From Bugula neritina (lineage: Eukaryota > Animalia > Bryozoa), in NCBI GenBank assembly GCA_964035545.1, contig OZ037766.1, forward strand, positions 28,999,673 through 29,063,672: 64,000 nt of DNA, written 5' to 3'. How positions within the stretch are numbered: the stretch's first letter is position 1; the number at the start of each line of letters is the position of its first letter. The position numbers and the translations under genes are program-made. Under the pieces are notes generated by a model. That model was given only the letters and a program-made list of their open reading frames with translations, was not told the origin of the DNA and ran no database searches. This document shows, in pieces, positions 174-56,641 of this stretch.

Positions 174-482
174 AGCTTTGAGTAAGGAGTAAACTGTTGC
201 TTGTAACTCTACAATAGTTTTCTGTTGAGTTTCAGATTCTTGCTGTTGAAGCTCTAATTCTTGCTGTAAAGCTTTATCTTTTAGGTGTAAGACTTCAACT
301 TGCTGCTGTAAAACTCTCTTTTGTTGATGATGCGTTTTATTCTGTTGTTTTAGAATAACAATCAGTTCTTCTCTTTGCTCTGCCAGCAACTCTCTAACAC
401 CCTCTACATCATAACTTCCAACACCAGCTGAGTATCCAATCAGACAACAGAGTGTGACCAAGGTTGCTACTGGAACACGCAT
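174..482 (-). CDS. First coding exon (signal peptide + Gln-rich coiled coil) of a short-chain collagen gene, 'MRVPV' type; rest of gene lies left of the window
   Basis: ORF 165..482 is closely similar to exon 1 of gene H (56312..56641). GT donor at 173 (GTATGT), phase 0, 103 codons. Flanks 1..1640 match about 56140..57650. Confidence 0.85.
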
Positions 483-924
483 TTTTATGGTGTTCTTTTA
501 ACAAAACTTTTATGAAATCAAAGCACAAGGACACATTCGAACTGTCTATAACACTTTCTTCTCGGGACCTCGTTAAGTAAAGCCTTCTGACTCACCTCTA
601 GCACACTATGATTAGAAACAGAGTTTATACAACTTTAATATTCACGAAGAGCCAATGATTAAGTCACATCTATTAGCTGGACCCAGCTGCTGTGTAATCA
701 ATCTCTCTACTTTATTCAGTTTGCTCATGAGATAGGAATAAGTCTTTTGTTACATTATTATAAAATATACATTTTATTGCCATTTGGTTTTGTACTGTAC
801 CTATTATCTTTCCAAAATAATACACAGTTTCTTCTTTTTTATTTAATTTGAATAATTTGCTTTTTAATTTTTAAACTGCAAATACTTGTTCAAAGATTCT
901 GGTTGCTTATAGGATTCTTATATA

Positions 925-1110
925 CATTGTTATTGTCTACTATCACTATATTGTTATTGTTTACTATCAATATATTGTTATTGTTTACTATCACTATATT
1001 GTTATTGTTTACTATCACTATATTATTATTGTTTACTATCACTATATTATTATTGTTTACTATCACTATATTGTTATTGTTTACTATCACCATATTGTTA
1101 TTGTTTACTA
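925..1110. repeat. 27-bp minisatellite (TATTGTTATTGTTTACTATCACTA-type), about 7 copies
   Basis: Visible tandem units. The paralogous position near 57075-57115 has only about 1.5 units. Explains spurious ORFs 890..1135 and 903..1154. Confidence 0.9.
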
Positions 1111-1478
1111 TCGCTACCCTGTTATTTTTTATCAATATTATAGGCCTACTATAGTTTTCATTTGGCTATTTTGTTATTTTCTGGCACTTGGTGATGCACT
1201 TTATTTTTGATTATGAACGTCATCACTATAGCTTTAAAACTATGTTTTACTTATAGAATGTGTACCATAACTTATAGCTGCACATTAAACTTATTATTTT
1301 TATAAAGTCACACGCCTAACCCAACACCTAACCAACCTAACCTTAACCTACCCCATCCAACTTTGGTGTAAAGAGGAAGTTATTAGAATTCCCTTTGACA
1401 TCAGTATTTATATATTTGAAAAACTCAACATTCTGATCTTATCATCTCATAGAAAAACTCAGTTTAAGAATTTTTTAT

Positions 1479-1640
1479 AGACTGTATATTGAGGTATTCA
1501 GTTTAAGAAGGAAGTTCCTAGTTCATATCAGCTCATAGAATAAATAATAATCATCAGTATTCAGTCACATTCAGTGTTATCTGATTCAATCATCAGTTCT
1601 GAGTACAAGTTTATTATCAGAATAATAGAAATATTTTATT
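1479..1640. repeat. Conserved ~160-bp intergenic spacer element of the array
   Basis: GAGGTATTCAGTT..GAAGGAAGTTCCTAGTTCATATCAGCTCATAGAATAA..ATCATCAGTATTCAGTCACATTCAGTGTTATCTGATTCAATCATCAG. Recurs at about 8764, 19432 (degenerate), 25550, 33053, 33533, 40201, 48810 and 57490. Confidence 0.85.
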
Positions 1641-1982: not shown

Positions 1983-4900
1983 TTATTTAGAACAAACAAC
2001 ACAAGTAAGCTGCTTCTTGTCATCATATGGTGGACAGTGTCCAGTAGTTCCATACCCTGAACAACCAGTTCTGACAAAGAAAAACAGAGCTCCATCTGTG
2101 TTGGCACTCATCCCTGTGATATACTCAGGATACTGATCTACACACTCATATGTAGTTGGTTTATAATCATATCTCGAAGTCATAAGGTATCCTGAAAACA
2201 CAAGCATATAAAACATTGTAAAGGAATTTAGACATGGGCTGTGTCTGTGAGCTTAAAACAGTGAATAATGTGCCAGCCAACAACAATGAAACTAGTAGTT
2301 GATATTATGTAGTATAAACCTATAATCACACCATTGTCTATACTACCATCTCTTATACATGCATTTCTAATTATAAGCTGCTATAGACCTACAGCACCTT
2401 CATATTCCTTTGTCCACCCAGTAGGACAAGATCTCTTGGCTGGAATCATCATAAGAGCTGGTCTGTTCTCTGTATAACATCTGGCACATGGTACATTCTG
2501 GTCATGAGCTGTACTGGGGAATATTCCATAATGTCTTTGAGATTGATATTCTACTCCACGAATCCCAGAACCAAGAAAACTGTCACCAGTGTATCCTCTG
2601 TTGTATTGTGGATCAGGGGGCATACACTGGTAGTTAACTCCACCTCCTGGAATGGAAAAAAATTCTCCACCAGCAAATCCTGAAAAAATAAAACTATTTC
2701 AATAGTATTAGAATGTACATATAGTTAGCAAAAATTGTCTAAACACTAAATAGTGATACAGTTAATTAAAGTGAGATAAAGTGAATAGATTTCTCAGCAG
2801 TAATTGCTGACTAATATTGTCATAGTTTTTATATACGATCAAAAGTTCTGCTATACGTAATAATAGTATAATCTGACTCACCTTCATAAAGCAAAGTTGA
2901 TTGTGAACCACAAGATTTTCTTCCCCATCTTACATAAACAGCACCTCCTTCATTATGTGCCACATTGCCAGGTGCTCCTTTTACTCCTTTCATCCCAGAA
3001 GCACCTTTTATTCCTGTAGGACCAGCTGCACCTGTAGCACCTTTTGCTCCTGGATTCCCATTTTTCCCAGGTATTCCAGAAACACCTCGAGTTCCATTGA
3101 CACCAGGTAAGCCAGGAACACCAGGTGATCCTAAATCTCCTTTAGCTCCTTTAGACCCAGGAACCCCTGTAAGTCCGGGACTACCAGGCAACCCATCTCT
3201 CCCTATTTATAAGACAGAGCCAAAAACAGTTTTATCCAAACACATTAAAGGCCTGGCCTCACGATCGTTATCCTCTCGTTATGACCAGCCGCCCACTCGT
3301 CAGACGAAACACATAATAGATAGTCCGTGAATGAGTCTTGCATGAGATACAAACAGCAGAAAAATGCCAAATGCAGAAATGTGGTAGAAATGAAATAATT
3401 ACTGTTGCTAAAATTTCATTGACCAATCAACTGGTGCTTATCGTCGATTTTGATTTTTCGTCTATCATCATCGGTGTGTGCACCCAACAAATATGATTTT
3501 GTTTGAATTCCTTTAAATTTTCTTGTACAATTGCTTTTACGTGTCAAATAGACAATTTCCTGTGATTCTCACGATTGTGAGGCCAGGCCTTTAATCATTG
3601 AATTTACAAAAAAACATTTGTATTCTGATATAAATGCTAGGTGATAAGTTAAGTTTCTCTCACCATCACGGCCGTTTGCACCATCTTTACCATCATCTCC
3701 ATCTTTACCATCCTTACCGTCTTTACCATCATCTCCACCTTTACCATCTTCTCCATCTCTACCATCTCTGCCGTCTTTACCATCTTTACCATCTTTACCA
3801 GAAATACCTCTAACTCCTATATAATTATCACATTGAAAATGTATGATTACAAAAGTAAGAATATTTCAGCCTTTTAATTTCCTACAATGTGTTTGCACTG
3901 CACCTTTACTATGCAAATACAAGCTCTTACAACAAAATGACATAATTATTACAGAATTGATATGTTACAAATATTCAAGCTGCATTATACTTAATCAAAT
4001 ATACATGTAAACACACTTTTAATATCAATATCTTTAATAATTTCTTTCATTTTGTGTATAATTGATGTAATAAAATATTTATAAACTTGATCTGTTAAAT
4101 TTTTTGATAATATAAACCTGAAAATGTATTATCCTTGCTCAAACTTTAATTGCCTAATTGCTTTTTGTCACTACAATTGATTAAAAGCCACTATTTTATA
4201 TAAACCATTCTTTATATAAATTTCCTATAAAATCTCAATATATTTCAATAAAGCTGCTGCAATCAAACCAGAAAACACGATCAAAGTAAAACTAGTTTGT
4301 CTAAACCTGTATATAATACTTAAAAAGGCCTCTAATTCAAAAAAAAATTACCATAAATACACAGCTGATCTAAAAAGTTATCAACTTCCTTTTCTTCCTC
4401 TTTTTCAAGAGAATCTGCAGTTGGCAACTTTCCATTGAGCAACTATAATAAATAATATTACACATTTCAATAATAGCTTTTATCTAAATTCATTGTGTTT
4501 GGGGTTGCAATTATGGTCACAGTGTATGAGTAATCCTAGCTATAACAAGTACACAAAATACTCCATTAAACTACTTGTAATTAGAATGTATTGTAAAGCT
4601 AAATATTTTCAACTCTAGATATAAATTGACTGACATAATTTGACCAGATTTCTTACGACAACTTAACATTGTTTTACTATTTTCTACTTGTAAATAATAA
4701 AAAGAAAAACCCTTCGAAACAGCTCAGTCAATCGACACTCAGAAAACAATCAATGGAGTTGGTTCAAAGTTGAACAGAATGACTTGCATTCCACATGCTG
4801 AATGCTTGAACTCATCTCTAAAATCAGACAGCTGTGAAGTAACAGCAGATGAAAGCATATAATAGCAGTGATGAGTGTGTACTCTTAGCTATAGTGTGAA

Positions 4901-5369
4901 CACTTTTAGCTACATGGGCGTAATGTGGGGGATAATTGCAAAAGCAGAAATATTATGAAGTATGTACTACTTTAATTGTTAGCAAAAACAATTCTTAAGC
5001 TAAAATAATTACTAAACCACTTTCTGTATATAATATATATAATAATGTTAATACACTTACAACATGCAGTAGTGAAAGTGTTGTGTGTTGTTGGGAAGTT
5101 ATCTGCTCCTGTTGTCTTTCTACCAAAAGCTGCAGCTCTCCTATCTGCAGCTGCTGATTTTCTATTTGCAGCTGCTGCTTTTCAATTTGTAGTTGCTGAC
5201 TTTCATTTTGCTGCCGAAAAACCTCTGCTAGTGTTTCCAACTTATTTTGTTGTTCTTCCAGAAACTCTTTAATATTTTCAACAGTACCACTGAGTATCCC
5301 CTCAGAAGAGTGAACTAGCAGTGTGCTTAGTGATATTAAGAGGAAAACTACAACATAATATACCAACAT
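1983..5369 (-). CDS. Short-chain collagen C4/spongin-like secreted protein, copy A (about 454 aa)
   Basis: Exons 5061-5369, 4352-4442, 3664-3816, 2882-3202, 2398-2679, 1983-2191. All introns GT..AG, phases 0,1,1,1,1, and the join is open. Contains Gly-X-Y repeats and the motifs GGAVYVRWGRKSC, NYQCMP, VPCARC, IPAKRSCPxGWTKEYEGYLM and CPPYDDKKQLTCVVCSK, typical of the spongin short-chain collagen NC1-like domain. Confidence 0.9.
3248..3591. mobile_element. MITE (non-autonomous DNA transposon) in intron 3 of gene A
   Basis: TIRs AAGGCCTGGCCTCACGATCGT / ACGATTGTGAGGCCAGGCCTT with TA on both sides. Absent from the same intron in B, C, D, E and H; present in F. Confidence 0.85.
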
Positions 5370-5842: not shown

Positions 5843-5930
5843 ACAGTACTACAGTACTACAGTACTACAGTACTACAGTACTACAGTACTACAGTACTAC
5901 AGTACTACAGTACTACAGTACTACAGTACT
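5843..5930. repeat. (ACAGTACT)11 tandem repeat
   Basis: Perfect 8-bp units, flanked by a duplicated TGTCATTGAATACCATA (5820-5836 and 5948-5964). Confidence 0.95.
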
Positions 5931-7679: not shown

Positions 7680-8572
<893 letters not shown>

Positions 8573-9339
8573 AAAATTTGTTATTTCAGACTGTCTGTAG
8601 TGCCATTGAAAATTTCCAAAACAGTTTTTAACATTTAAATTTTCAAACAAACTATGCAATAAAATTGTAGAACATACATCCAGGTAATTCTATTCAACCC
8701 CATATATCTTTCCAAATATGAAGTTTTTATGTTCCATAATGACAGTGTAGAACATAAGCTATTAAGCTATTCAACTGAGGAAGGAAGTTCCTGTTTCACA
8801 TCAGCTCATAGAATAACTAATAATCATCAGTATTCAGTCACATTCAGTGTTATCTGATTTAATCATCAACTCTCAGTACAAGTTTATTATCAAAATAATA
8901 GAAATATTTTGTTCTTTTCATGTAAACTCATGCAAACTAATTCTAGGTATGCTATCCTTTTATGTCATTGCTCTTGTGACCAAATCTTTTGATAGTAGGA
9001 ATTAGCTGCATTTACTTTGTAACCATATCAATTGCGTGTGTTTGAAAACCTTTACAATACTGCACACCATGGCCCTTGTACTGTCATAAGTGTACAATAA
9101 TTGGGTGCTGAGTTAGTGAAATCTAAAATGTTGGATTTGCAATAAAATTGTTAGTGGAGGAAGCTGTGTTCTTTGACATTGTGCAAACAAGTTCACTCTT
9201 TGAACTTTGTAGCTTGAAGCCATTTTATGGAAAGCTAAAAATTTAAGATTGCTTAAAGCTGCATGTACACAGGCCAATTTTTTCAGCCGATTTTGTACTT
9301 GCCGATTTCGCTATTGTTGATTAAAAAATCGCTTGCTGT

Positions 9340-13089: not shown

Positions 13090-16000
13090 TTATTTAGAAC
13101 AAACAACACAAGTAAGTTGTTTCTTGTCATGATATGGTGGACAGTGTCCAATAGTTCCATCTCCAGAGCAATCAGTTCTGACAAAGTAGAACAGAGCTCC
13201 ATTTGCATTGGCACTCATCCCATTGATATACTCAGGGTATTGGTCTACACACTCATATGTAGCTGGATGAGGATTGGCATTACCCTCAGTCATGAGGTAT
13301 CCTGAAAATATACAGAGGAGTTTTAACATGTGCTACATAATTACTACTTACATTAGCAATAGATTTTTATGCCTGTTTTAGTTATATATATTTGTAGCAA
13401 TCTGTGGTTTAACCTTGATAGGGAAGCATTTCTTCCAAAAAAGCATGAACATAAACATACCAGTATTGGTAAATTTAAAGATTTCTGTTAGAGATCACAA
13501 ACAGGCTATATTAATTGCACGACATGTTTTATTACTCTATGTAGTGTTGAATCATTCCTATTTCTGCATTATAGGGTTTAAATACTAAATTTATCAAAAT
13601 TGAATAATAGTTTATATAAAAAGGTGCTAAAAAGTAAAGTTCAAAAAGGATTCACAAACTATGATTTCATGGTATTTTAGCTTAAATGCATTGCAACCTT
13701 GGGGTAATAATATTTAAAACTAATATCAGCATTGCTTATTACCAACTTACAAGAACAATAATAGTTAGTGTTACCTTCATATTCTTTTGTCCACCTAGAT
13801 GGACAGGATCTCTTAGCTGGAATCATCATAAGAGCTGGTCTGTTCTCTGTATAACATCTGGCACATGGTACATTCTGTTGATAAGCTAAATCAGGGAATA
13901 TTCCAAACTGGTTTGTTTGATATTCTGAACCAGTCATTGCAGAACCCTGAAAACTGTCACCAGTGTAAGCTCTGTTGTATTGTGGGTCAGGGGGCATACA
14001 CTGGTAGTTCACCCCACCTCCAGTGTTTTTATAATATGCTCCACCAGCAAATCCTGGAAAAATATAACTGTTTCAACAGTAGCCTATATCATGTGCGTAC
14101 ATATAGTTAGCAATCATTAAACTTAATCAGTTCAACACCTAATAAGTTTCACATTGTGTGCAATAAGTTTCTTAGAAGTGTTGCCATATTTTTCATAGAG
14201 TCAAACCTTCAGTTATACAAAATAATTGTAATCACATTTACCTGCATAAAGTAAAGTTGATTGGGAACTACAAGATTTTCTTCCCCATCTTACGTAAACG
14301 GCTCCTCCTTCAACATGTGCCGCATTGCCAGGAGCTCCTTTCACTCCTTTGAGACCAGCTGCACCTGTAGCACCTTTTGCTCCAGGAGTGCCATTTTTTC
14401 CAGGTGTTCCAGAAGCTCCTTGAGCTCCATTGACACCAGGCAAGCCAGGAACACCAGGTGACCCTATATCTCCTTTAGCTCCTTTAGACCCAGGAGCCCC
14501 TGTTGGACCTGTAGGTCCAGGACTACCGGGTACTCCATCTCTCCCTATTTATAAGACAGAATCAAAATAGTTATATACCAAAAATTTACTTATTGAATTG
14601 GCAGAAAAACACTTGCATTCTGATACAAAGTTTAGGTGCATGGTATATAAGTTAAGTTTCTCTCACCATCACGACCATTTGCACCATCACGACCATTTGC
14701 ACCATCACGACCATTTGCGCCGTCATCTCCATCTTTACCATCCCTACCGTCTTTGCCATCTTTACCATCTTTACCAGCGATACCTCTAACTCCTAACATA
14801 CATTGTGAATGTATGATTACAAAAAAAGAATATAGCTTTATGGTGACCTGTATAGTGTTTACGCATTGCACCTTCATTGTGCAAATACAAGCTCTTACAA
14901 TAGTATGACATTTTACAGATGTTAAAAATATCCACAGCTGTATTATACAATCAAATAATCAACATGCAAACACACTTTTGATATAAATATCTTCAATAAT
15001 TATTTTCATTTCATGTATAATTGATGTAATAATATATTGAAAGGATTTATATAGGAGTTATCTTTGTATCGAAAGGACAACTCTCTTACTACTTCGCTAC
15101 TATCATCTACTCGGTCTGCTAGTAATGGCCTACTACGCTACTAACCTACGCTGTGGACTATGGGAGGAGCCTAGTAATGTGAACTGACAGTTACCACACT
15201 CGGGTAGCTGGCAGTCAGGCAGTGAATTAGCTAGTAATAGGTTGTTGTTTTCTAAGTCAATTGTATAGTTTTACTCGTGTATAAATTGTATTAAATAAAT
15301 GCATAATAATTCCTTTAGCTTGGCAGTGTTGCATTACTTTAAATACTCAAGCAATTAGTGAATGCACAGTTTCACAACAATATTTATAATCTTGACTTGT
15401 TAATTTTTTCATTATTATAAACCTGAAAATTTATTATCATTGCTCAAACTTTTACTGCCGAATTGTTTCTTGTTACTACAATTGATTAAAAATCCACTTT
15501 TTTATATAAACCACTTCCTATATACATTTCCTATAGAATCTCAATATTTTTTATGAAACCAATAAAGCTGCTGGCTAAACCAGAAAACATAATCAGAGTA
15601 AAACTAGCTTGTCTATATAAAACTTAAAAAGCCTTTAATTCAAAAGTTATACTTTTTACCATAGATGCACAGCTGATCTAGAAAATTATCAACTTCCTTT
15701 TCTTTCTCTTTTTCAAGAAAATCTGCAGTAGGCAACTTTCCATTGAGCAACTATAATAAATAAAATTACATATTTCAAAAATAGCTTATATCTATACATG
15801 CATCAAGGGTGTACAGGCTCGTTATTTGCAACTATGGTCACATTGTAAGAGTGTGTTAATTGCTTTAATCTTAGATATCACAAGTAAACAAAATACTCTA
15901 TTAAACTGCTTTAAATACAGTGTATTGTAAAACTAAAGATTTTCAGCTCTGGATATAAATTTATTGAAATAATTTGAGCAGATTTATTACCACAACCTAA

Positions 16001-16729
16001 CATTATTTTACTATTTTCTACTTGTAAATAATAATTAGAAAGCCTTGCGAAACAGCTCAGTCAATCAACACTCAGAAAACAATCAATGGAATTGGTTCAA
16101 AGTTGAACAGAAAGACTTGCATTCCACATGCTGAATGCTTGAACTCACCAGTAAATGAAAGCAGTCATGAGTGCTTACTTTTAGCTACAGTGTCAATGAG
16201 AATAATGTGGGGGTAATTGCAAAAAGAGAAATATGTGTGTACTACTGTTAGCAAAAACAACTCTTAAGCTAAAATAAGGATTAAATCACCTTCGATATAT
16301 TATATATATAATATATAATAATGTTAATCCACTTACAACATGCAGTAGTGAAAGTGTAGTGTGTTGTTGGGAAGTTATCTGCTCCTGTTGCTTCTCTATC
16401 TGCTGCTGTTGCTTCTCTATCTGCTGCTGTTGTTTTTCTATCTGGAGCTGCTGTCCATCATTCTGCTGTTGCTGCTCTTTATTCTGAAGCCGCTGATTTT
16501 CTATTTGCAGCTGCTGATTCTCTACCTGCTGCTGGAGCTTTTTAATTTGTAGTTGCTGACTTTCATTTTGCTGCCTAAAAACCTCGGTTAGTGCTTCCAA
16601 CTTATTTTGTTGCTCTTCCAGAAACTCTTTAACATTTTCAACAGTACCACTGGGTATCCCCTCAGAAGAGTGTACTAGCAGTGCGCTTAGTGTAATTAAG
16701 AGGAAAACTACAACATAATATACCAACAT
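13090..16729 (-). CDS. Short-chain collagen C4/spongin-like protein, copy B (about 467 aa)
   Basis: Exons 16337-16729, 15660-15750, 14667-14792, 14242-14544, 13775-14053, 13090-13301. Canonical splice sites and the same phases as A. Confidence 0.9.
15038..15379 (+). mobile_element. Probable solo LTR in intron 2 of gene B
   Basis: TG..CA termini, 4-bp TSD ATAT, internal AATAAA. Empty site in A (about 4070) and F (about 43385). Confidence 0.7.
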
Positions 16730-20131: not shown

Positions 20132-23100
20132 TTATTTAGAACAAACAACACAAGTTAGCTGCTTCTTATCATCATATGGTGGACATTGTCCAGTAGCTCC
20201 ATTTCCAGAGCAAACAGTTCTGACAAAGTAGAACAGAGCTCCATTTGCATTACCACCCATTCCATTGACATACTCAAGATCTTGATCTACACACTCATAT
20301 GTAGTTGGGTGAGGATGATCATAACGTTGACTCATCAAGTAACCTGAAATGACATGCAAACAAGTTTCAAATTTACTGTAAATACTAGATTTAATAGAAG
20401 TAGATGTTTATAAGAAGTGTTTTGCATTGTTTAATAACCATTATCAGCTTCCCAATATAAAAATTATATTTGGCAACTAGCAATTAATGCAGTATGTATA
20501 GTAATAAATTAGACAAAGCAAACTATCAAAAACTAATGCTTTGAAACTATAACTTCTACAAGCATGCGACTTCATGTTTTTCAATATAACAGGTTGTGAT
20601 TAATTGCTTAATTGATATTAATGATTTAAGGGCTTTTAGACAATACTTTTTTGGTGAATAAAAAATAATACAATATATAAAATAATACTATTAAATTAGG
20701 TGAAATTATTACATATACATAGCACTATGCCTATCTTTCAAATTTAGCCATAGGAACCTTAAGAATAAAAAATAAACATAATAACACTAAGTTATAGATA
20801 TATGGATCATTACTAATTTCTGGAAATAGGGCATTTGTTGAGATATAAACAATATAATTACCTTCATACTCCTGTGTCTACCCAGATGGACAGGATCTTT
20901 TAGCTGGAATCATCATAAGAGCTGGTCTGTTCTCTGTATAACATCTGGCACATGGTACATTCTGTTGAACAGCTGTATTGGGGAATATTCCATAGTGTTC
21001 TGTTTGGTATTCTGCACCATTTATGGAAGAGCCTTTAAAACTGCCACCAGTGTAGGCTTTGTTGTATTGTGGGTCAAAGGGCATACACTGGTAGTTAACT
21101 CCACCTCCAGTGTTTGTATAATATTCACCTCCAGCAAATCCTGAGAAAATAAAACTGTTTTATTAGTATGTGTGTTCATGGATAAATAGTAAACATTATC
21201 TATAAAACACTAAATGATAATCTAATTAATTAAAATGAGATAAAATAGATAAACTTCTTAGCAGTAATTTGCTGAGTAATATTGTCATAGTCTTCATATA
21301 CAAATATAACCTTCTATGACGCAATAGATTAGTACTAATTATTTCACCTGCATAAAGTAGTGTTGATTGGGAACCACAAGATTTTCTTCCCCATCTTACG
21401 TAAACAGCTCCTCCTTCATTATGTGACACATTGCCAGGAGCACCTGGAGCACCTGTTGGACCTCTCAATCCTGTAAGTCCAGGAATACCAGGTAATCCGT
21501 CTCTCCCTATTTTTAAAACAGAGTCAAATGCTGTTATATGCTAAAATATTTGCTCATAGAATTGGCAGAACAATACTTGTATTCTAGCTGATAAGTTAAG
21601 TTTTTCTCACCATCACGGCCACTTGCACCATCATTTCCATCTCTACCATCTCTGCCATCTTTACCAGTAAAACTTCTGACTCCTAATATAGATATTGAGA
21701 TTGTATGATTGCAAAAGAAAAAAATGCAGCTTCTCATTATCTTGCCATGTGTTTGCTTTGCACTTTCATTGTGCAATTACAAGCTCATGCAATGATGTAG
21801 CATTTTACAAAATTCGTATCTTAAAAATATTTACGGCTATATAAATTTTGCTGTAAACTTTTAAACAGCCACTCATATAGTATATAATCAACGAAAGATA
21901 TTGCTTGCATGCGTGTGATATTTTGCCATTAATGAGTGCATGTATAAACTTTAATATATGTAGCCTATTATATTAGCTGCCATCTATTGCAAAGTGAGAA
22001 GCAATCATTATATTATAGTTCAAATCTAAAAAAGAATCAAGTTATATATGCAGTACTTTTGATCTAAAATGTATTTATTTTGAATTATATTGCCAATTTA
22101 AATTAAATTACAGTTGAGTTCAAGCTGTGATGGTAGAAAATTAAAATCTGAATAGCCTCAATCAAATTCACAATTAAGATATGCACATTTTTGGTCTAAT
22201 CTTTTTCATTGGTTTAAAATTATATATTGGCGTAATAAAACATAAAAGTTTGCTTTTTAATTTTGATTCATAATGAACCTTAAAAGTCTCAATATCCGTT
22301 GTGTTCACCTAAACTGCATGTCAGCTAGTTAATTGTTTACTGTGACTAAAATTGAGTAAAATTGACTTTTTCTCCATATAGACCAGTTCCTATAATATAT
22401 ACTGATAATTTTAATTCAGAAATTTGTAATAAAACCTACATATAAAGCTGTTTGCCAAATCTAAATAAAATATAATATATAAATAAAACATTTTCTGTCA
22501 TTTTAAGACAAGAATAATTTTATCTATAATACAAAGCCTTTAATTTAAGAATAATAACTTTTACCATGTATATGCACATCTGGGATAAAAAGCTAACAAC
22601 TTCATTTTCTTCCTCTTTTTCAAGATAATCTGCAGTTGGCAAAGTTCCATTGAGTAGCTATAAATGAGATCAAACATTTCAATAACAATTTTTATATATC
22701 CTCATGCATGGCTTTATAGATTAATCGTCTGCAAATAAACGGTCACAAAGTATGCGTGAGTATATTTTACTTTCATCTTATAGCTATCACTAGTTATGCT
22801 AGAAAGTACACTAAAATTCTTTACCAGACGTTGTATTTTAAGTTTAAAAATTGTCAGCTCTAGATTTTGTAATTAATTTACTCAAATAAACTACAGCAAG
22901 ATTCACTACCATAATTTGATATAACTTTGAATATTCTGTTTGTAAATACTAAATATTAAATTATTCGAATATATAGTAACCCGAAAAGTTAAAACTTATA
23001 GGAAAAAAACTATTGGAATTGATTCAAAATTTAAACAAAGTGTTTTGTCTTCTTTATATGGCAGATGCTGAAAGCAGGCAGCTGTGATGTAACAGCCAAT

Positions 23101-24143
23101 AAAAGCGCTTAGCCTAGGGCCACACTGTGCGTAAATTCTCGCATGCGAAAATTGAAACCGCAGGTAGCAAAGGTGTCCACTGTAGCGTCAGGGAGATCAG
23201 AAAACTACTTATAGCTAATAATATTTGCGTTTAACTTTACGTACTGCCCGCCTTGTTGCTATATGGCTACAAGTGTGGGATAAATGAATTTTTCATTTTT
23301 AAATTGCCCTCGCTTTCAATAAAACGCACTTGCATTCAGAATGCTGAGCGGCAAGTGCGAATGTTTTCTCAACGCATACAGTGGACACCTTTGCTACTTG
23401 TGGTTTAAATTTTCTCATGCGAAAATACGCACAGTGTGGCCCTAGGCTTAGCACAATATAGCGTAAACTGGGAATTATGTAACAAAAGCAACAAACGTGT
23501 ACATATGGTGTATACATTAATTTAATCATTAGCTTATATATGATCCAATTCAGTTAAGATTTCCAGTACATTGGACAGAACTAAGTGAATATATTCTGTG
23601 CCATAAGGTATAACTATGATATTGTATGCTTCTTGAGAGAAAAAATTTGATTAAAATAAATCTAAATACAAAGTTCATAGCATAAGTGTTCACTAAATTG
23701 TAACGAAAGGATTCAGAACACAAATGCTGCAATGGCTAAAGCGAGTAAAATATGTATATAGGGTATACGCAGAGCTGATAACGCAAGTTGAAACTTATTG
23801 CATCATTCAATTCTTGATGTTAAATTAAATATTAAACCACACTTTGTTTATCGGGTGTATAATAATATGTTAATCCACTTACAACATGCAAATGCGCTGT
23901 GCGTTTTTGAGCAGTTATCTGCTCCTGAAGCAACTCTATCTGCTGCTGCTGCCTCTCAATTTGTAGTTGCTGACTTTCATTTTGCTGCCTAAAAACCTCT
24001 GTTAGTGCTTCTAACTTATTTTGTTGTTCTTCTAGAAACTCTGTGATATCTTCAACAGTACCACTGGGTATTCCCTCAGAAGAGTGAACTAGCAGTGTAC
24101 TTAGTGTTATTAAGAGGAAAACTACAACATAATATACCAACAT
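20132..24143 (-). pseudogene. Short-chain collagen copy C, pseudogene
   Basis: Exons 23883-24143, 22565-22657, 21611-21682, 21348-21506, 20862-21140, 20132-20343. Exon 2 is 93 nt instead of 91 (frameshift). The conserved Trp codon is TAG at 20878-20880. There is a Gly-to-Ser change in the collagen of exon 3. Confidence 0.85.
23111..23448. mobile_element. MITE with ~70-bp TIRs (AGCCTAGGGCCACACTGTGC...) in intron 1 of copy C
   Basis: Long TIRs including GTAGCAAAGGTGTCCACTGTA, with T/TA flanks. Same family as 33730..34073 in the opposite orientation. Confidence 0.85.
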
Positions 24144-29780: not shown

Positions 29781-30404
29781 AAATATAACTTTAATAAATG
29801 CACAATTGTTGTACATGGAATATTGACATTAATGTCTCACAAAAGCCTTGAATCTATTAAAAAGTTGCAACTCCCTGACTAAATTTGATATATCTATATA
29901 CAAAGTGACCATAACTCCTTAAGTAGGCTCTACATATTTATACAAGGTGACCATAACTCCTAAACTGCAATCTATATATCTATACAAGGTGACCATAAAT
30001 CATAAATGCCTTGCTATTTCACCATAACTTCCTGTCTAAATAATACATATGGATTAAATAGTGGTATAACAACTTACAGCATTGAGACTGTTTTGTAGAC
30101 ACTGAATTTTGTTTAATATTCAAATTTCCAAGAATAACAAGTTAACCTATATATTAATTACCGCTGTAACTAGTCAATCTTATTTCTATATACACGGGCC
30201 CAAACAGTCATGGGGACTTATAGAATAAACTGTATAACTTAATAAAACTGTTTTTGAAGATTTTACAGATTATAAATAATTTAATTGCTAGTTTGTCAAT
30301 AATTAGCTTAAAGGAAAAGCGTTTACTCTTATCTTTTTACAGTTGCGTTTCAAAGTGATATTATGTCAAAACTTTGAAAATACTAATACAAATATTACAA
30401 ATAC

Positions 30405-32030
<1,626 letters not shown>

Positions 32031-32134
32031 CCATTTACATATAAAACTTGTTTCTTAAGAACTGTCGGAAGTGCTTTGATAGATTTTTGGAGTTTTCCTT
32101 TGATTTCATATTATTTAGCCTTTGAGTGATATAT

Positions 32135-34580: not shown

Positions 34581-37527
34581 TTACTTAGAACAAACAACAC
34601 AAGTTAGCTGCTTTTTATCATCATATGGTGGACAGTGTCCAATAGTTCCATCTCCAGAGCAATCAGTCCCGACAAAGAAAAACAAAGCTCCATTTGTATT
34701 ACCACTCATCCCATTGATATACTCAGGATTTTGATCTACACACTCATATGTAGTTGGGTGAGGATGATTGGAATATTGAGTCATCAAGTATCCTAAAATG
34801 ACATGCAAACAAGATTAAAATGTTACTACCACTATGGCACTATATGATTTAGTTAAAGGAAATCTAAAGATTGGGCAAGGTCTTTTCATAGCAATAATCA
34901 ATTTATATATGCATAGTGATATATATAAAGTGAATGCTGATATCTGTTTCAAGTAAGTCATAAAAACCATGCAATATTCAGAACTAACATCAACATTGAG
35001 TAGGTATATATGGATCATTGCAAGCTTAGAAAAGTGATGCTTTCAAAATATGAATAATATGACAACCTTCATACTCCTGTGTCCACCCAGATGGACAAGA
35101 TCTTCTAGCTGGAATCATCATAAGAGCTGGTCTGTTCTCTGTATAACATCTGGCACATGGTACATTCTGTTGCACAGTTGAATCAGGGAATATACCATAA
35201 AACTGTGATTGATATTCTGCACCACTTATCAAAGAACCCTGGAAACTACCCCTAGTGTATGCTCTGTTATATTGTGGGTTCAGGGGCATACACTGGTAGT
35301 TAACTCCACCTCCTGTGTTTGTATGAAATGCTCCACCAGCAAATCCTGAAAAAATAAAACAGTTTCAATAGTATGTGTGTAATTCACATGTAAGTAGCAT
35401 TCATTGTCTATATAAACCACTAAATGGTAATTTGATTAATTAAAGTGACATAAATGAATAAATTTTCAGCGCAATTGCTGATTAATATTATCATGATATT
35501 TTCCACATACAAGGAAACATTCAGTAATACATAATAATAGTAATCTAATTCACCTTCATAAAGCAAAGCTGATTTGGAACCACAAGACTTTCTTCCCCAT
35601 CTTACATAAACAGCACCTCCTTCAACATGTGACACATTGCCAGGAGCACCTGGGGCACCTGTTGGACCTCTCAATCCTGTAAGTCCAGGACTACCAGGCA
35701 ATCCATCTCTCCCTATTTAATAAAAGGAACCAATTAACAGCTCTTATATACCAAACATGTCGTTACTCATTCAATTTACAGAAAAACATTTGTATTTTGA
35801 TATAAAGTTTAGGTGATGAGTTGAGTTTCTCTCACCATCTCGGCCATTTGCACCATCACGACCATTTGCACCATCATCTCCATCTTTACCATCTTCTCCA
35901 TTTTTACCATCTCTGCCGTCTTTGCCATCTTTACCATCTTTACCATCTTTACCAGAAACTCCTCTAACTCCTATATACCGTCACATTGAAAACAGATGAT
36001 TACAAAAGTAAAAATATTAAAGCCTTTTAATATCCCGGCCACAATGTGTTTGCATTGCACTTTTATTCTGTAAATACAAGCGGTTACAACAATATATAAA
36101 TATGATAGCACTTTACAGAATTAAGATCTTGCAAACATCTCTACAGTTGTATTTTACATCAAATATACGTGTATACACGCTTTTGATCTAAATCTCTTTT
36201 ATATAATTCATGCGCTAATTCATATATAATAATTGTACTAATATATTTATAAACTTTGCTTGTAAACTTTTTAACAATAAACTTAAAAATGTATTATCGT
36301 TGAGCAAACTTTAACTGGCTAGTTGCCTATTAATTCTCAACAAAATTGATTGAAGGCCACTTGTTTGTCATATAAACAATTCCCTTTATAAACTGCAAAC
36401 AAAATCTCAACATTTGCTTCTGAACCTAGTATATAAAGCTAGTAGTTAAACCAAAAGAAAACATGATCAATGTAAAGCTAATCTGTCTATAATGCAGAAA
36501 TAATTAATAAGGCCTCTAATTCAAAATTTATACTTTTTACCATAGATGCACAGCTGATCTAAAAATTTATCAACTTCCTTTTCTTCCTCTTTTTCAAGAG
36601 ATTCTGCAGTTGGCAAGTTTCCTTTGAGTAACTATGATAAATAAAATTACACTTTTCAATAATTGCTTTCATCTATACATGCATCATGAGTGTACAGGCT
36701 TTTCATTTGAAATTAAGGTTACATTTTATGGGTGTTTTAATTGCGTTAATCTTAGCTATCACAGTACACAGAATATTTCATTAAACTGCTTTAAATACAT
36801 TGTAAACCTAAAGATTTTTCCTTCTGAATATGAATTTACTGACATAATTTGACCAGATTTATCACCACAACCTAACATTATTTTACTATTTTCTTCTTGT
36901 AAATAATAAATAGAAAGCCTTGCAAAACAGCTCAGAAAACAATCAATATATGGAGTCGGTTCAAAGCTGAACAGAATGACTTGCATTCTACATCCTGAAT
37001 GCTGGAACTCATCTCTAAAATCAGATAGCTGTGAAGTAACAGCAAATGAAAGCGGAGCTCAATAGCAATGATGAGTGCTTACTCTTAGTTACAGTGTGAA
37101 TGAGCATAATGTAGGGAAAAGTGCAAAAGCAGAAATATGTATGTGCTACTTTGATTGTTACCAAAGACAACTCTTAAGCTAAAACAATGATTAACCTACT
37201 CTCTATATGTTATGTGTGTTATAATGTTAATCCACTTACAACATGCAGCAGTGAAAGTGTTGTGTGTTGTTGGGAGTTTATCTGCTCCTGTTGCCTCTCT
37301 ATCTGCTGTTGCTGCCTTTCATTCTGAAGTTGCAGCTTCTCAATTTGTAATTGCTTACTTTCATTCTGCTGCCTAAAAACCTCTGTTAGTGCTTCCAACT
37401 TATTTTGTTGTTCTTCTAGAAACTCTTTAATATTTTCAGCAGTACCACTGGGTATCCCCTCAGAAGAGTGAACTAGCAGTGTGCTTAGTGTTATTAAGAG
37501 GAAAACTACAACATAATATACCAACAT
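34581..37527 (-). CDS. Short-chain collagen C4/spongin-like protein, copy E (about 387 aa)
   Basis: Exons 37240-37527, 36541-36631, 35836-35970, 35554-35712, 35067-35345, 34581-34792. Confidence 0.88.
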
Positions 37528-38889: not shown

Positions 38890-39625
<736 letters not shown>

Positions 39626-41034: not shown

Positions 41035-47193
<6,159 letters not shown>

Positions 47194-48696: not shown

Positions 48697-48740
<44 letters not shown>

Positions 48741-49331: not shown

Positions 49332-50390
49332 TTATTTAGAAAAAACCACACAAGTTAACTGTTTCTTGTCATAATATGGTGGACAGTGTCCAGTAGTTCC
49401 ATACCCAGAGCAATCAGTTCTGACAAAGAAAAACAGAGCTCCATTTGTGTCATCACTCAGTCCTGTTATGTACTCAGGGTATTCATCTACACACTCATAT
49501 GTCGCTGGTTTATAATTATGTCTCGAACTCATATAAGGTATCCTGAAAACACAAGCATATAAAACATTTAAAGGAATTGTAGGCATGGGCTGTTTCTGTG
49601 TGCTTAAAGCTGTCAATAATGAAACTATAGTAGTTGATATTATGTAGTATAATCACACCATGGTCTATACTACCATCTCTTATACATACATTTCTAATTA
49701 TCAGTACCTTCATATTCCTTTGTCCACCTAGTAGGACAAAATCTCTCAGCTGGAATCATCATAAGAGCTGGTCTGTTCTCTGTATAACATCTGGCACATT
49801 GTACATTCTGGTCATATGAGCTGTATTAGGGAATATTCCATAATGTCTTAGAGATTGATATTTTGCTCTGCCCATCAAAGAGCCAGAAAAATCATCACCA
49901 GTGTCAACTCTGTTGTATTGTGGGTCAGGGGGCATACACTAGTAGTTCACTCCACCTCCAGTGTGGTTATAGTATGATCCTCCAGCAAAGCCTGTATGTT
50001 TACAAGCGTAAAAACATAACGTGCTTGTTAAAAACAACAATGTGCACTAGTGTGTGGGTGTGTGAGTGTGTGAGTGTGTGAGTGTGCGAGTGTGCGAGTG
50101 TGCGAGTGTGCGAGTGTGCGAGTGTGCGAGTGTGCGAGTGTGCGAGTGTGCGAGTGTGCGAGTGTGCGAGTGTGCGAGTGTGCGAGTGTGCGTGTGAGCG
50201 TGTGAGCGTGTGAGCGTGTGAGCGTGTGTGTATGTGTGTATGTGTGTGTGTGTGTGTGTGAGTGTGTGAGTGTGTGAGTGTGTGAGTGTGTGTGTGTTAA
50301 CACCCAACCTTTAATTAATAAAGTTGATTCTGCAATGCAGCATATAGTTCTTCCCCATCTTGTACAAACAGCACCTTCTTCAACTTCATC
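49332..50390 (-). pseudogene. Truncated short-chain collagen copy G (exon 4 remnant, exons 5 and 6)
   Basis: Exon 5 (49708-49991) has TAG at 49939-49941 and a 2-nt insertion near 49815. Exon 6 (49332-49542) has a 2-nt insertion and the last Cys is Phe. EEGAVCTRWGRT remnant at about 50345-50385. No exons 1-3 found. Confidence 0.88.
50050..50297. repeat. (GAGTGTGC)n/(GT)n repeat
   Basis: Direct reading. Confidence 0.95.
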
Positions 50391-52785: not shown

Positions 52786-53620
52786 TACTATACTTATTTA
52801 GAATTATAAAAATATCATTCCACTTTTGTCATCATAAAGCTGTCCATTTAGAATTTATAATTTAGATAACAGCCTTGTGCTTAAAAATTTCCAAAGTATT
52901 TATTTTTTACATTTAAATTTTTAATCACATTATAGAATAAAATTGTAAAACATACACCAAGGTGTTTCTATTCAACTGCATATATGTTTTCCCAAAATAT
53001 ATATAACATTTGTATATTACAAAATGACAGTGTAGAACATATTAAATGTACATCCAGGTGGCTCTATATATCAACTCAGAATTTTTTTCTACAACTACTC
53101 CACAAATTGTGACATATGTATTTGTTTTGATAAAAGACAAATTTAGCCTTTGTGTTTTAATGCACAGTACTGCCGTTATTGGATGCATTAAAGCTCAGTG
53201 CATATTCTATGAAATCAAAATAAATCAATTAATATAAACAAATTCACATGGCTCAACAACTTTCTACTTCAGGAGGTCTTTAGAAATCATAGGCTTTTTG
53301 AGGCCTCGGCCTATAACAGGCTAAATCAATAATCAAAAATTAAAATATATGAATATAGTTTGTTTCCACAATTTTCTGTTTTTTTAAGCTTTTATTTGTA
53401 GTATACTAAGTCAATAAAACCTTTAATCTTACAAAGACTTCTGCAAAATAGTATAATATAGTTGTGAGTAGTTCAACCACTCAAAATTTTGGGCAATAAA
53501 ATGGTGTGCTCATAACATATATAGTAGTTAATGTATATCAGATTAGAAAAAAGCAATTACAACATACTACACTTATTTATTTTTATGAAAATTAATTAAA
53601 TTTTGTCATCACTAAACTGT

Positions 53621-53724
53621 TTATTTAGAACAAACTACACAAATAAGTTGTCTCTTATCATCATATGGTTGACAGTGTCCAGTAGTTCCATGTACAACTA
53701 GCTCTGATGAAATAGAACAAAGCT
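53621..53724 (-). pseudogene. Degenerate, internally deleted copy of the last exon
   Basis: Reads ..GTTGHCQPYDDKRQLICVVCSK* about 200 bp downstream of the stop of gene H. Confidence 0.8.
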
Positions 53725-53925
53725 ATGTTATAAGTATCTTTCTATTAATATTAAATACTTATCTGAACGAGCAAAATAATTATTTAGGATGATCTTTAGC
53801 ATTGCATTTCGTGCACTCATTGAGTAATTCAAGTCATAGTTGAGCATATAAAGGTTATTAAAGGTTAAAATATTTAGCAGTTAAATACTAGTTGAATACA
53901 TAAGTCTTTTTTGATTAGACACAAA

Positions 53926-56641
53926 TTATTTAGAACAAACAACACAAGTAAGTTGTTTCTTGTCATCATATGGTGGACAATGTCCAGTAGTTCCCTTTCC
54001 AGAGCAATCAGCTCTGATAAAGTAGAACAGAGCTCCCTCTGTATCACCACTCATCCCATTGATATACTCAGGATCTTGATCCACACACTCATATGTAGTT
54101 GGATGGCCATGGTTGCAATGAGCAGTCATTAAATATCCTGAAATACAACTTGAATGTATTATATTGACTCTTAAACTGACAAGTTTAGCAAACCATCTTT
54201 CATTTGTTAAATTTCTGTTTATTTGTTTTAAAAAAAACTAAAAAGATGCTATAATAGCAGTATATTATGCAGACAAAGAATTTATGCCATATTAGTGAGA
54301 ATTCAAAGTCATATTTTAAAAAAAGTGATTTTATAATGTCGATTACCTTCATACTCCTTAGTCCACCCAGATGGACAAGATCTCTTAGCTGGAATCATCA
54401 TAAGAGCTGGTCTGTTCTCTGTATAACATCTGGCACATGGTACATTCTGGTTATGAGCTGTACTGGGGAATATTCCATAATGGTAAGATTGATATTCTGC
54501 ACCATTTATCAAAGAGCCTCCACCATAGCCACTGGTGTAGACTTTGTTATATTGTGGGTCAGGGGGCATACACTGGTAGTTAACTCCACCTCCTGTGCTA
54601 TCATAATATACTCCACCAGCAAATCCTAAAACAATAAAATTATTGTGTTAGTATATTGTGCATGTGTACATATAATTAGTAAACATTACTTAATCAGTTT
54701 AAAACCTAATAAGTTTCACTTTGTGTGTAGTAATACATTTTTACCAGCAATTTCATGGTGATTATTGATATTGTCATATTCTTATTAAAAACCTGCTCTG
54801 TGATGCAAAATAATAGTAATCTAATTCACCTTCATAAAGTAAAGTTGATTGAGAACCACAAGATTTTCTTCCCCATCTTACATAAACAGCACCTCCTTCA
54901 ATATGTGACACATTGCCTGGAGCACCTTTTACTCCTTTCATGCCAGGAGCACCTTTTATTCCTATAGGACCAGCTGCACCTGCAGCACCTTTTGCTCCAG
55001 GATTCCTATCCTTCCCAGCTGCACCTGTAGCGCCTTTTGTTCCATTGACACCTGGCAAGCCAGAAACACCAGGTGACCCCAAATCTCCTTTAGCTCCTTT
55101 AGACCCAGGAGGCCCTGCTGGACCTCTCAATCCTGTAAGTCCGAGACCACCAGGTAATCCATCTCTCCCTATTTATAAGACCGAACCATAAACAATTGAA
55201 TAATAAAACACAAATTACTTATTGGATCGTCTGAAAGGCTTTTTTATTCTAATAAAAATGTCGATTGTGAGAATTGCTTTATTGCTTTCACCATCACGGC
55301 CGTTTGCACCATCTTTTCCATCTTTACCATCTCTGCCATCTTTACCATTTTCCCCATCCTTACCATCTTCCCCATCTCTACCATCATCTCCATCTCTACC
55401 ATCTCTACCATCTTTACCATCTTTACCATCTTTACCAGCAACACCTCTAACTCCTAATACACATTGAAAACATATGATGACAAAATTAGGAATAGAGCTT
55501 TTTAATATTCTACATGTGTTAATACATATAGCACCTTTATTGTGGAAATATACATGCCCTTGCAACAGCAGCAAGGAGTTATACAAAATTAAAATATTAA
55601 AAACAGCCACAGCGCTGTAATATCCATTCAAATATACGTGTACACACACTTTGTACAATTAAACATACAAACACTTACATCTAAGTATTCTCTATCTGTC
55701 ATTCTTTGAAATACAATATAGCCTACAGTGCTTGGTAGTGGTTGAGCTAGCTAGTATAATATTATTGGTTGTGATATAAGCAGTAGAAGTCATATTAGTA
55801 GCATCAGTACAAGTAGTGTTGGTAGTAGCGGTAATGGTAGTGGCAGCAGCAGTGGCAGCGGCAGTGATAGTGGCAGTAGTGGCGCCAACATGGGTATTTA
55901 TAGATTGTTAAAGTGAGGTCTTTACCAAAAATGCAGATCTGTTCTAGCAAACTTGGAAGCTCTTCTCCCTCGCTTTCTCCAAAGTTTTCCGTTTTAGGCA
56001 ATTCTCCAGTCAGCAACTTAAAAAGCAAGTTGTAGCAGAGCTGTTACTTTATACTTACATCTACTCATTGAGTACATTATTATTTGAATGCATTGTATGT
56101 ATATTATTGTATTGTATTGCATGTTATTGTAGTAAATAAAATAGCAACACTGCACACACGAAGTTTTTATGGAGTATTCAACTCTAACTCTGACAAATAA
56201 ATACAAAATTTAAATGTTTGAATTATTTTCTGAGTAAAATTTATTCTTATTTCAACAGAGTTCCAGGCACTTCCAGAAAACAACTAGAGCTACTATGTAG
56301 TTCAAACTTACAGTTTTGAGTAAGGAGTAAACTGTTGCTTGAAGTTCTTTATTAGTTTGTTGTTGAATCTTGGATTCCTGCTGTTGAAGCTCTAACTCTT
56401 GCAGTAAAGATTTATCTTTTAGCTGTAAAGCTTCCACTTGTTGCTGTAGAACTACACTCTGTTGCTGTAAAGCTATAATTTGTTGCTGATGCGTTTCATT
56501 CTGTTGTTTAAGAATGACTTCCAATTTTTCCTGTTGTTCTGCCAGCAACTCTCTAACACCCTCTACATCATAACTTCCAACACTATCTGAGTATCCAATC
56601 AGAAAACAGAGTGTGATCAAAATTACTACTGGAACACGCAT
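53926..56641 (-). CDS. Short-chain collagen C4/spongin-like protein, copy H ('MRVPV' type, about 470 aa)
   Basis: Exons 56312-56641, 55926-56016, 55292-55453, 54830-55168, 54347-54625, 53926-54137. Confidence 0.9.

Follow-up and report, generated by a model that had tools for sequence, protein, structure and literature searches.

A Tandem Array of Spongin-Type Short-Chain Collagen Genes with Variable Head Loops in the Bryozoan Bugula neritina

The 64,000-nucleotide stretch of Bugula neritina DNA analyzed here, referred to as the window, carries a row of genes for short collagens whose C-terminal heads keep a fixed set of cysteines and differ from copy to copy in a few short segments. Do these segments form a diversified surface, or are they loops of a structural collagen under little constraint? 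An earlier note on this DNA, made from the sequence alone, had proposed diversifying selection on a binding surface, serving either non-self recognition or combinatorial assembly. Our results place the genes in the spongin short-chain collagen family, and the window is probably one stretch of a large, tandemly arranged family of this type whose products serve as structural matrix or cuticle.

Gene content and turnover of the array

As listed in Table 1, the window contains six intact six-exon genes (G1, G2, G4, G5, G6 and G8). Alongside them lie a damaged copy (G3), exon 1 of a further copy (G0), a fragment (G7) and the isolated remnant of a last exon. All lie on the minus strand, in line with the same-strand arrangement described in the earlier note, and its count of at least nine loci holds when the G7 fragment and the lone G0 exon are included. 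A five-exon gene model left exon 1 out of phase with the collagen exon, and this was resolved by adding a small exon 2, which encodes a single cysteine ahead of the collagen and stands out as a conserved island within intron 1. With exon 2 in place, every junction of the intact models is GT-AG and in phase, and the six-exon numbering used previously, with the head assigned to exons 4–6, is correct.

Table 1. Short-chain collagen loci in the window (exons in order of transcription)
Locus	Span	Strand	Exons	Description
G0	174..482	(-)		exon 1 alone: signal peptide and helix, MRVPV type
G1	1983..5369	(-)	5369-5061, 4442-4352, 3816-3664, 3202-2882, 2679-2398, 2191-1983	intact, 6 exons, 454 aa, 44 Gly-X-Y triplets; GT-AG throughout, frame open
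G2	13090..16729	(-)	16729-16337, 15750-15660, 14792-14667, 14544-14242, 14053-13775, 13301-13090	intact, 467 aa, 39 triplets, GT-AG throughout
G3	20132..24143	(-)		damaged copy, probable pseudogene
G4	26235..28780	(-)	28780-28544, 28010-27920, 27561-27454, 27352-27194, 27002-26724, 26446-26235	intact, 361 aa, short collagen, 21 triplets
G5	34581..37527	(-)	37527-37240, 36631-36541, 35970-35836, 35712-35554, 35345-35067, 34792-34581	intact, 387 aa, 24 triplets
G6	41035..47193	(-)	47193-46843, 43748-43658, 43139-43032, 42565-42236, 42044-41763, 41246-41035	intact, 457 aa; intron 1 hosts retroelement ORF
G7	49332..50013	(-)		fragment: one exon 5-like and one exon 6-like piece, exons 1-4 missing
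Last-exon remnant	53621..53689	(-)		tblastn match to exon 6 end, CVVCSK and stop codon
G8	53926..56641	(-)	56641-56312, 56016-55926, 55453-55292, 55168-54830, 54625-54347, 54137-53926	intact, 470 aa, exons 1 and 2 of a second type, GT-AG throughout

The second-type exons 1 and 2 of G8 read MRVPV... and LLTGELPK...ICIFG, and its product shares 83% identity and all exon junctions with the Bugula neritina annotation KAF6033447.1. Exon 1 of G0 shows 71% identity to that of G8 in tblastn and ends in a donor, GCT|GTATGT, at position 174. The remainder of G0 lies beyond the left edge of the window; since its collagen B exon, in locus L018, is frameshifted, G0 is likely a pseudogene. G3 has lost the exon 2 donor (TG where GT is expected) and carries an in-frame TGA in exon 5 (CPSG*TQEYEG). 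Both pieces of G7 contain frameshifts and stops, and its terminal residues are CVVFSK. In G4, the linker cysteine of exon 2 is replaced by tyrosine. The ORF in intron 1 of G6 (44952-46253) matches RVT_1 in Pfam.

Genome-wide, at least 76 matches to exon 5, and hence head exons, were detected. They lie in several tandem clusters, and the cluster containing the window comprises about 26 genes across 330 kb. G3, G7, G0/L018, L025 and the last-exon remnant are broken copies. The tandem array described in the earlier note is confirmed, and the birth-and-death process it proposed is evident in pseudogenes, fragments and near-identical recent duplicates: the family expands and decays through tandem duplication, pseudogenization and retroelement insertion.

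Protein layout, head fold and family membership

The genes encode, in order, a signal peptide, a long helix, a cysteine-bearing linker, 21–44 Gly-X-Y triplets and a 187-residue head. A structural model of exon 1 consists of a signal helix and a single long helix (residues 26–102), which is Gln/Glu-rich, differs in length between copies owing to internal repeats and is probably a trimerizing coiled coil. The linker is short and acidic, with one cysteine, and the Gly-X-Y runs that follow are uninterrupted in all six intact models; exon 4 matches Pfam Collagen. The head is internally duplicated, as revealed by BLASTP, and has 10 invariant cysteine columns across 21 intact paralogs. HSQ is absent from the lobe starts, and the one HSQ found, inside a variable loop of L017, is a chance occurrence.

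The genes belong to a known family, the spongin short-chain collagens, annotated as "short-chain collagen C4-like." A profile search with window exon 5 returned 1799 representative protein clusters; full-length matches from Watersipora and the sponge Amphimedon carry this name, and window exons 5 and 6 show 46–47% identity to the Amphimedon protein (E = 3e-25 and 3e-19). Spongins are defined by a short helix and an NC1 domain with 7 shared and 3 own cysteines and without the HSQ motif (Fidler et al. 2017, PMC5395295); the Ephydatia "short-chain collagen C4" was described earlier (Exposito 1991; Aouacheria 2006; cited in PMC5395295 and PMC12749355), and Pfam PF01413 fails to detect spongins too (PMC12749355). 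Our literature search yielded no publication on spongin-type collagens in bryozoans.

An AF2 model of the head of a Watersipora relative, which is 53–56% identical to the window heads, has a pLDDT of 92.3. When this model was used as a Foldseek query, the best 42 matches were all collagen IV NC1 domains (best E 6.7e-6; TM 0.39–0.53 by query), and VIA gave Z values of 7.2–8.1 over 128–154 residues with an rmsd of 4.3–5.4. As modeled, the head has the two-lobed collagen IV NC1 fold, and the fold search bears out the earlier description of the proteins as secreted short-chain collagens carrying an NC1-like head. The relationship is visible at the level of fold only: Pfam C4 (PF01413) did not match window exons or full-length relatives, and nothing turned up, even at E = 10, when profiles of exon 5 or of 100 whole heads were run against PDB sequences. 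Pfam also detected no C-type lectin, fibrinogen-like or C1q domain on the exons or full-length relatives, and the resemblance to defense collagens suggested in the note is not supported: the head has the NC1 fold and belongs to the structural spongin short-chain collagen family. A CTHRC1/C1q-like reading of the head was rejected because the structural matches are all NC1.

Loop variation, selection and recombination

The seven strings following GFAGG in the earlier note (EFFSIP, AYYKNT, EYYTNT, EFHRNT, AFHTNT, VYYKGT and VYYDST) and the seven following YLM match exactly, in the order G1, G2, G3, G4, G5, G6, G8. One-residue indels are present, and the placement of the two main loops behind two internal repeats agrees with the BLASTP result. 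The proposed richness in Tyr, His, Ser, Asn and Gly stands as a sum (50.7%, versus 29.9% in the scaffold) but not for Tyr, which is not enriched; Ser, Thr, Asn and His drive the effect. Variation is strongly clustered, and the variable segments fall in loops, with a mean entropy of 0.73 bits versus 0.29 in strands. Variable positions in the array coincide with those of the family as a whole (rho 0.62 between array and family-wide entropy), and members from other phyla, among them sponges, molluscs and amphioxus, vary in these loops as well. The variable segments are surface loops, weakly constrained, on a strongly constrained scaffold.

Codon tests were conducted on 21 intact heads from 3.3-kb loci of the cluster, with the L030 outgroup left out because of its long branch (1.8). 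The M0 omega was 0.29. Two site classes improved on one omega by 203 log-likelihood units, 115 of 187 codons were significantly below omega 1, and the site classes comprised 61% at omega 0.04, 36% at 1 and 3.5% at 3.2. Scaffold omega was 0.15, with synonymous divergence of about 0.45, while variable segments ranged from 0.5 to 1.2 and, when pooled, gave 0.8, significantly below 1. The two loops stressed in the earlier note had omega values of 1.2 and 0.9, neither differing from 1, and no loop group was significantly above 1. In the variable segments dN was 0.16, compared with an intron divergence of 0.13 and a dS of 0.26.

An M2a-type test was formally significant (LRT 23.8, p = 7e-6; 25.3 for exon 5 alone), and some positive selection may accordingly have occurred. 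The signal is carried by 3–4 codons in exon 5 with omega about 3 and vanishes once the synonymous rate is site-specific: in a FEL-like test with its own synonymous rate, columns 59, 62 and 71 were not confirmed and nominal hits fell only at columns 28, 66 and 83. It is also confounded by significant recombination, which inflates such tests. The site-model analysis proposed in the note thus yielded a few fast codons that are not robust to synonymous-rate variation, and diversifying selection on a binding surface is a weak proposal in light of the pooled loop value, the recombination and the family-wide variability.

The histories of exons 5 and 6 differ significantly (AU tests, p = 5e-7 and 4e-4), the PHI test gave p = 0.0035 and 0.0065, and recombination is significant both within and between head exons, with visible mosaic paralog pairs. 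L012 and L017 differ by 9.2% in exon 6 but only 1.9% in intron 5, and in some recent pairs the head exons diverge more than the neighboring intron, an excess that selection for diversity would likewise yield. Recombination or gene conversion shuffles head exons and exon pieces among copies. Loop variation drifts near the neutral rate and is reshuffled, and we see no convincing sign of antibody-like selection.

Predicted assembly, alternative readings and known systems

The multimer modeling suggested in the earlier note was carried out on the Watersipora relative. Its head was predicted by predict_complex to form a homotrimer with a score of 0.94 (best control, 0.00); in calibration, this score was reached by 21 of 30 proteins whose solved structure pairs two copies of one chain and 0 of 23 single-chain proteins, with 17 of 29 and 0 of 30 among eukaryotes. 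Runs agreed in at least 87% of contacts, partner pLDDT was at least 88, and the result may stem from solved NC1 hexamers memorized by the predictor. In this homotrimer the interface takes up 101 of 182 residues, and the contact set includes 4 of 6 positions after GFAGG, 12 of 13 in columns 52–66 and 10 of 10 after YLM. Residues 37–42 and 62 of one chain contact residues 120–131 of its neighbor. Of the fast codons, column 62 lies on the contact face formed on the exon 5 side, and columns 71 (also encoded by exon 5) and 123 lie on the opposite contact face; column 59 sits in an insertion without a counterpart in the model. The main loops are thus placed at chain seams, but variable positions overall are not enriched at the predicted interface (27/46 versus 72/134, odds ratio 1.2, p = 0.6). 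The predicted trimer favors chain–chain seams, and with them assembly, over a free recognition surface.

As the results stand, we read the array as an ordinary expansion, specific to its lineage, of a family of structural genes, and not as a new recognition system. Heads and N-terminal helices would gather three chains, and the products would be structural matrix or cuticle collagens, an assignment based on what the family does in sponges. The handful of very fast exon 5 codons may mark chain-pairing surfaces diverging after duplication; they are equally explicable as an artifact of recombination and local rate variation. A stronger version, rather unlikely in our estimate, holds that seam loops decide which paralogous chains assemble, as NC1 does in collagen IV, so that duplication, selection on seam residues and exchange of exon 5/6 faces would create many homo- and heterotrimer specificities. 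This would fit the model, in which the three main loops lie almost entirely in inter-chain contacts, residues 37–42 and 62 meet 120–131 of the next chain and columns 62, 71 and 123 occupy contact faces, as well as the discordant exon histories and the M2a-type LRT (p about 1e-5). It is opposed by the absence of interface enrichment, loop-group omega at or below 1, the null result for columns 59, 62 and 71 with site-wise synonymous rates and the inflation of M2a-type tests by recombination; moreover, the model is that of a relative's homotrimer and possibly a memory of NC1 hexamers. That the array actively generates pairing specificities, with conversion swapping exon 5/6 seam faces and pseudogenes as possible donors, is unlikely. 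If true, such a generator would keep supplying a cuticle or matrix of graded composition with new homo- and heterotrimers.

It is very unlikely that the heads, borne on a collagen stalk, serve in pattern recognition or allorecognition in the manner of collectins, ficolins or C1q, with ligand-binding loops under diversifying selection. The layout of coiled coil, stalk and globular head, the large tandem family, the Ser, Thr, Asn, His and Gly content of the loops, the few codons with omega about 3 in one test and the head exons that outpace adjacent introns in some recent pairs are all compatible with recognition, but the head has the NC1 fold of a structural family with no lectin, fibrinogen or C1q domain by Pfam, omega in the loops does not rise above about 1, the loops vary likewise in sponges, molluscs and amphioxus, and the main loops are predicted at chain seams rather than on a free face. 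Still more improbable is an array in which most copies are dead or dying and variability is pseudogene drift. Despite the broken copies and retroelement insertions, six window and 21 cluster copies have kept an open reading frame, GT-AG splice junctions and all 10 invariant cysteines, and the low scaffold omega at appreciable synonymous divergence and the 115 constrained codons argue against it. Structural spongin-type collagens remain the more probable reading.

Defense collagens (collectins, ficolins and C1q) share with the window proteins an oligomerizing collagen stalk and a globular head, and some form multigene families, but their heads (C-type lectin, fibrinogen-like and C1q/TNF) are unrelated to NC1 in fold and ancestry. 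Nematode cuticle collagens, cnidarian minicollagens and mussel byssal preCols provide examples of tandem short-collagen paralogs with cysteine knots; large structural collagen families build extracellular materials, and collagen length varies among their paralogs. Their terminal domains differ from those described here.

Spongin short-chain collagens are an old, little-studied sister of basement-membrane collagen IV. Like the window genes, they combine a short Gly-X-Y region with a C-terminal two-lobed NC1-type head that has 10 cysteines in total, lacks HSQ at the two lobe starts and goes undetected by PF01413. The window genes add a long N-terminal helical exon and a cysteine linker ahead of the collagen, features common to other bryozoan, amphioxus and further database members, and differ from previously described spongins in the very large size of the family and in head exons that are recombination mosaics. 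With collagen IV NC1 (PDB 1LI1, 1M3D, 5NAX, 8TYS), which directs chain selection, the modeled head shares its fold and two-lobe duplication, and the predicted trimer is similarly ring-like, with a lobe of one chain contacting its neighbor's other lobe. Identity is 12–17%, however, and the TM-score only 0.39–0.53; the head is ~40 residues shorter (182–187 versus about 225), has 10 cysteines rather than 12 and does not match Pfam C4, and there are 21–44 triplets and no 7S domain, in contrast to the long, interrupted helix of about 1400 residues and the HSQ-bearing NC1 of collagen IV. The bryozoan head exons, at least 76 in number, represent a natural variant series of an NC1-type trimerization head, and their combination of a constrained scaffold, free seam loops and recombination could be used to probe how NC1-type domains choose their partners.

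Gene units and their products

tblastn searches with exon-sized ORFs as queries resolved the window (G000:C2:28999673-29063672 of a eukaryotic 216 Mb genome with ~31% G+C) into repeated gene units, every one on the minus strand and with six coding exons. Intron 1 of every copy carries a conserved 170-nt island that represents a small exon 2, with a product of 31 letters (LLTGELPK...QICIF-G in G8). With exon 2 counted, six of the spongin short-chain collagen copies, numbered G0 to G8 from left to right, have open frames and GT-AG at all junctions. G8 is 83% identical to the independently annotated Bugula neritina protein KAF6033447.1, with identical exon junctions, and taken exon by exon the copies are 79-97% identical to B. 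neritina proteins, which makes the genome that of B. neritina or of a close relative. The exon numbering, coordinates and loop strings of the earlier note are correct according to our gene models.

Gene copies, repeats and mobile elements in the window, and family loci elsewhere in the genome
Feature	Location	Strand	Description
G0	174-482 (first exon)	-	collagen exon beyond window, frameshifted
G1		-	intact, 454 aa
G2		-	intact, 467 aa
G3		-	damaged: exon 2 donor lost, TGA within exon 5
G4	27920-28010 (exon 2)	-	intact, 361 aa
G5		-	intact, 387 aa
G6		-	intact, 457 aa
G7		-	fragment: exons 5-6 only, frameshifted
G8		-	intact, 470 aa
Last-exon remnant	53621-53689
ORF between G1 and G2	10177-11550	-	457 aa; zinc knuckles and retroviral-type aspartyl protease; gag-protease portion of LTR retrotransposon
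ORF in G6 intron 1	44952-46253	-	433 aa; reverse transcriptase domain RVT_1 (E = 2e-9); retroelement insertion, (TA)n runs on flanks
Just past last collagen gene	58321-59763; 61297-62034	+	BEL/Pao-type retrotransposon fragments (Peptidase_A17); 245-aa ORF with baculovirus FP-like domains
Intergenic spacers	7744-8573; 30392-32043; 38891-39641; 44339-44582		very long microsatellites of compound (ATATAC)n/(TA)n type, the longest 1.65 kb
C2 cluster	C2 28.75-29.08 Mb		two blocks, opposite orientations
Further cluster	C1 2.19-2.25 Mb (G000:C1:2187000-2254000)		at least 13 tandem copies, different subfamily
Further cluster	C1 2.70-2.74 Mb
Further cluster	C1 29.59-29.65 Mb
Further cluster	C5 14.74-14.77 Mb
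L028	G000:C2:33293724-33297002		lone family member, 4 Mb off

Exon 1 encodes a hydrophobic signal helix followed by a single long predicted helix (residues 26-102; pLDDT ≥90 along most of it), whose length differences come from Q-rich repeats. Exon 2 supplies an acidic linker with a single Cys immediately ahead of the collagen helix, exons 3 and 4 together contribute 21-44 Gly-X-Y triplets, and the end of exon 4 with exons 5 and 6 encodes the C-terminal head of ~187 residues with 10 invariant Cys. In G4, which is otherwise intact and has the shortest collagen helix (21 triplets), the linker Cys is replaced by Tyr (QLYTHG vs. QLCIYG); judging from its sequence, this chain may lack the inter-chain disulfide. 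Spliced coding sequences were used for local alignment and codon analysis, database searches were run with single exons, and fold and complex predictions were made on the head of a database relative from Watersipora rather than on window proteins.

Family distribution and exchange between copies

The exon 5 profile matched 76 places genome-wide. The C2 cluster accounts for ~28 of them, namely 26 exon-5 matches that are complete and two copies that are split and frameshifted. Copies in the C1 2.19-2.25 Mb cluster are 79-97% identical per exon to the B. neritina protein EB796_009150 (P0160) and have the same exon layout. The collagen exon of L028 is long and highly repetitive, with GASGKPGSKGET many times over, and is followed by a head of the same type. 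Because several matches from other species sit on common contigs, a tandem arrangement seems usual for the spongin-type family.

The copies are actively born, lost and exchanging sequence. In AU tests each of the two exons rejected the tree of the other (p = 5e-7 for the exon 5 data, p = 4e-4 for the exon 6 data), and PHI was significant inside exon 5 (p = 0.0035) and inside exon 6 (p = 0.0065). A mosaic structure is visible in recent pairs. Between G1 and locus L017, divergence is 6-10% from intron 5 through exon 6 to the 3′ flank, but intron 4 cannot be aligned; between loci L012 and L017, exon 6 differs by 9.2%, synonymous changes among the differences, and the adjacent intron by 1.9%. Intron 4 of L012, L014 and L017 contains (CA)n runs, and such runs and long microsatellites could favour unequal crossing-over.

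Family and fold of the head

Searches with the exon 5 profile returned 1799 representative clusters. Full-length matches named "short-chain collagen C4-like" came from Watersipora subatra, a bryozoan, and from the sponge Amphimedon, the latter 46-47% identical to window exons 5 and 6, and by sequence the window genes belong to the spongin short-chain collagen family. Members of this family, which ranges from sponges to amphioxus, combine a short helix with a collagen IV-like NC1 (PMC5395295). Pfam C4 did not match the genes and PDB sequence searches likewise showed no collagen IV relation; spongins are reported to be missed in the same way (PMC12749355). The AF2 model of the Watersipora head (pLDDT 92.3; 53-56% identical to window heads) had structural matches to collagen IV NC1 only, with the top 42 Foldseek hits (best E 6.7e-6) and VIA Z of 7.2-8.1. 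The fold of this relative thus agrees with the NC1-like head proposed earlier. The likeness to defence collagens suggested at the same time is not supported, the head being neither a lectin, a fibrinogen nor a C1q domain.

The exon 5 profile search also recovered two multi-domain proteins (P0001, P0007). One, from the choanoflagellate Choanoeca perplexa (EukProt), is 3949 aa long and has 11 tandem spongin-type NC1-like domains without collagen, followed by Cys-rich repeats and a membrane span; the other, a metagenomic relative of 3827 aa, has 6 domains of this kind. Spongin-type heads are therefore not confined to animals or to collagens.

Variable loops, selection and predicted chain contacts

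Among 21 aligned intact heads from the C2 cluster, variability was limited to seven column segments, which are loops in the Watersipora model (mean entropy 0.73 bits in loops vs. 0.29 in strands). Site by site, array entropy correlates with that in a set of 100 heads representing other phyla (Spearman 0.62, p = 3e-20). Selection was analyzed with custom codon-likelihood code, with relative branch lengths held fixed from IQ-TREE. The one-ratio ω was 0.29. By segment, ω was 1.2 after GFAGG (columns 28-33), 0.9 at 52-66, 1.0 at 70-74, 0.8 at 79-85 and 0.9 after YLM (122-131), none differing from 1, and fell below 1 at 143-150 (0.7, p = 0.027), at 161-168 (0.5, p = 0.00017) and in all variable segments pooled (0.8, p = 0.005); the scaffold, at 0.15, was far below 1. 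In 22 pairs with alignable introns, dN was 0.16 in variable segments and 0.04 in the scaffold, intron divergence 0.13 and dS 0.26. The scaffold is strongly constrained, and the loops evolve near the neutral rate.

The earlier note had read the loops as a binding surface under diversifying selection, serving either non-self recognition or an assembly code, and site models gave a signal of such selection: M2a was preferred over M1a (LRT 23.8, p = 7e-6), with site classes at ω 0.04 (61%), 1 (36%) and 3.2 (3.5%), and posteriors above 0.98 at columns 59, 62 and 71 (lower at 31, 123 and 165). Exon 5 on its own tree gave an LRT of 25.3, and exon 6 alone a non-significant 2.4. M2a-type tests yield false positives under recombination, which weakens this result, and when each site was given its own synonymous rate in a FEL-like test, columns 59, 62 and 71 were unsupported, appearing fast for synonymous and non-synonymous change alike. 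With no loop segment significantly above 1 and an NC1 fold, recognition is not supported. The loops might instead determine chain pairing, as an assembly code at the chain seams. Modelled as a complex, three copies of the head from Watersipora gave a score of 0.94 in three runs (best control 0.00), with contact agreement ≥87% and partner pLDDT ≥88; of proteins solved as one-chain pairs, 21/30 attained the score mark, against 0/23 of those solved as single chains (17/29 and 0/30 in eukaryotes). The pass may be owed to the predictor's memory of solved NC1 hexamers. When loop columns were placed on this homotrimer by alignment, predicted inter-chain contacts took in 4/6 residues after GFAGG, 12/13 at columns 52-66 and 10/10 after YLM, with residues 37-42 and 62 contacting 120-131 of the neighbouring chain. 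The predicted interface, however, comprises 101/182 residues, and variable positions were no more frequent in it than elsewhere (odds ratio 1.2, p = 0.6). An assembly code is possible on these predictions and unproven.

Taken together, our results identify the array as part of a known family of structural collagens that has undergone lineage-specific expansion in tandem.
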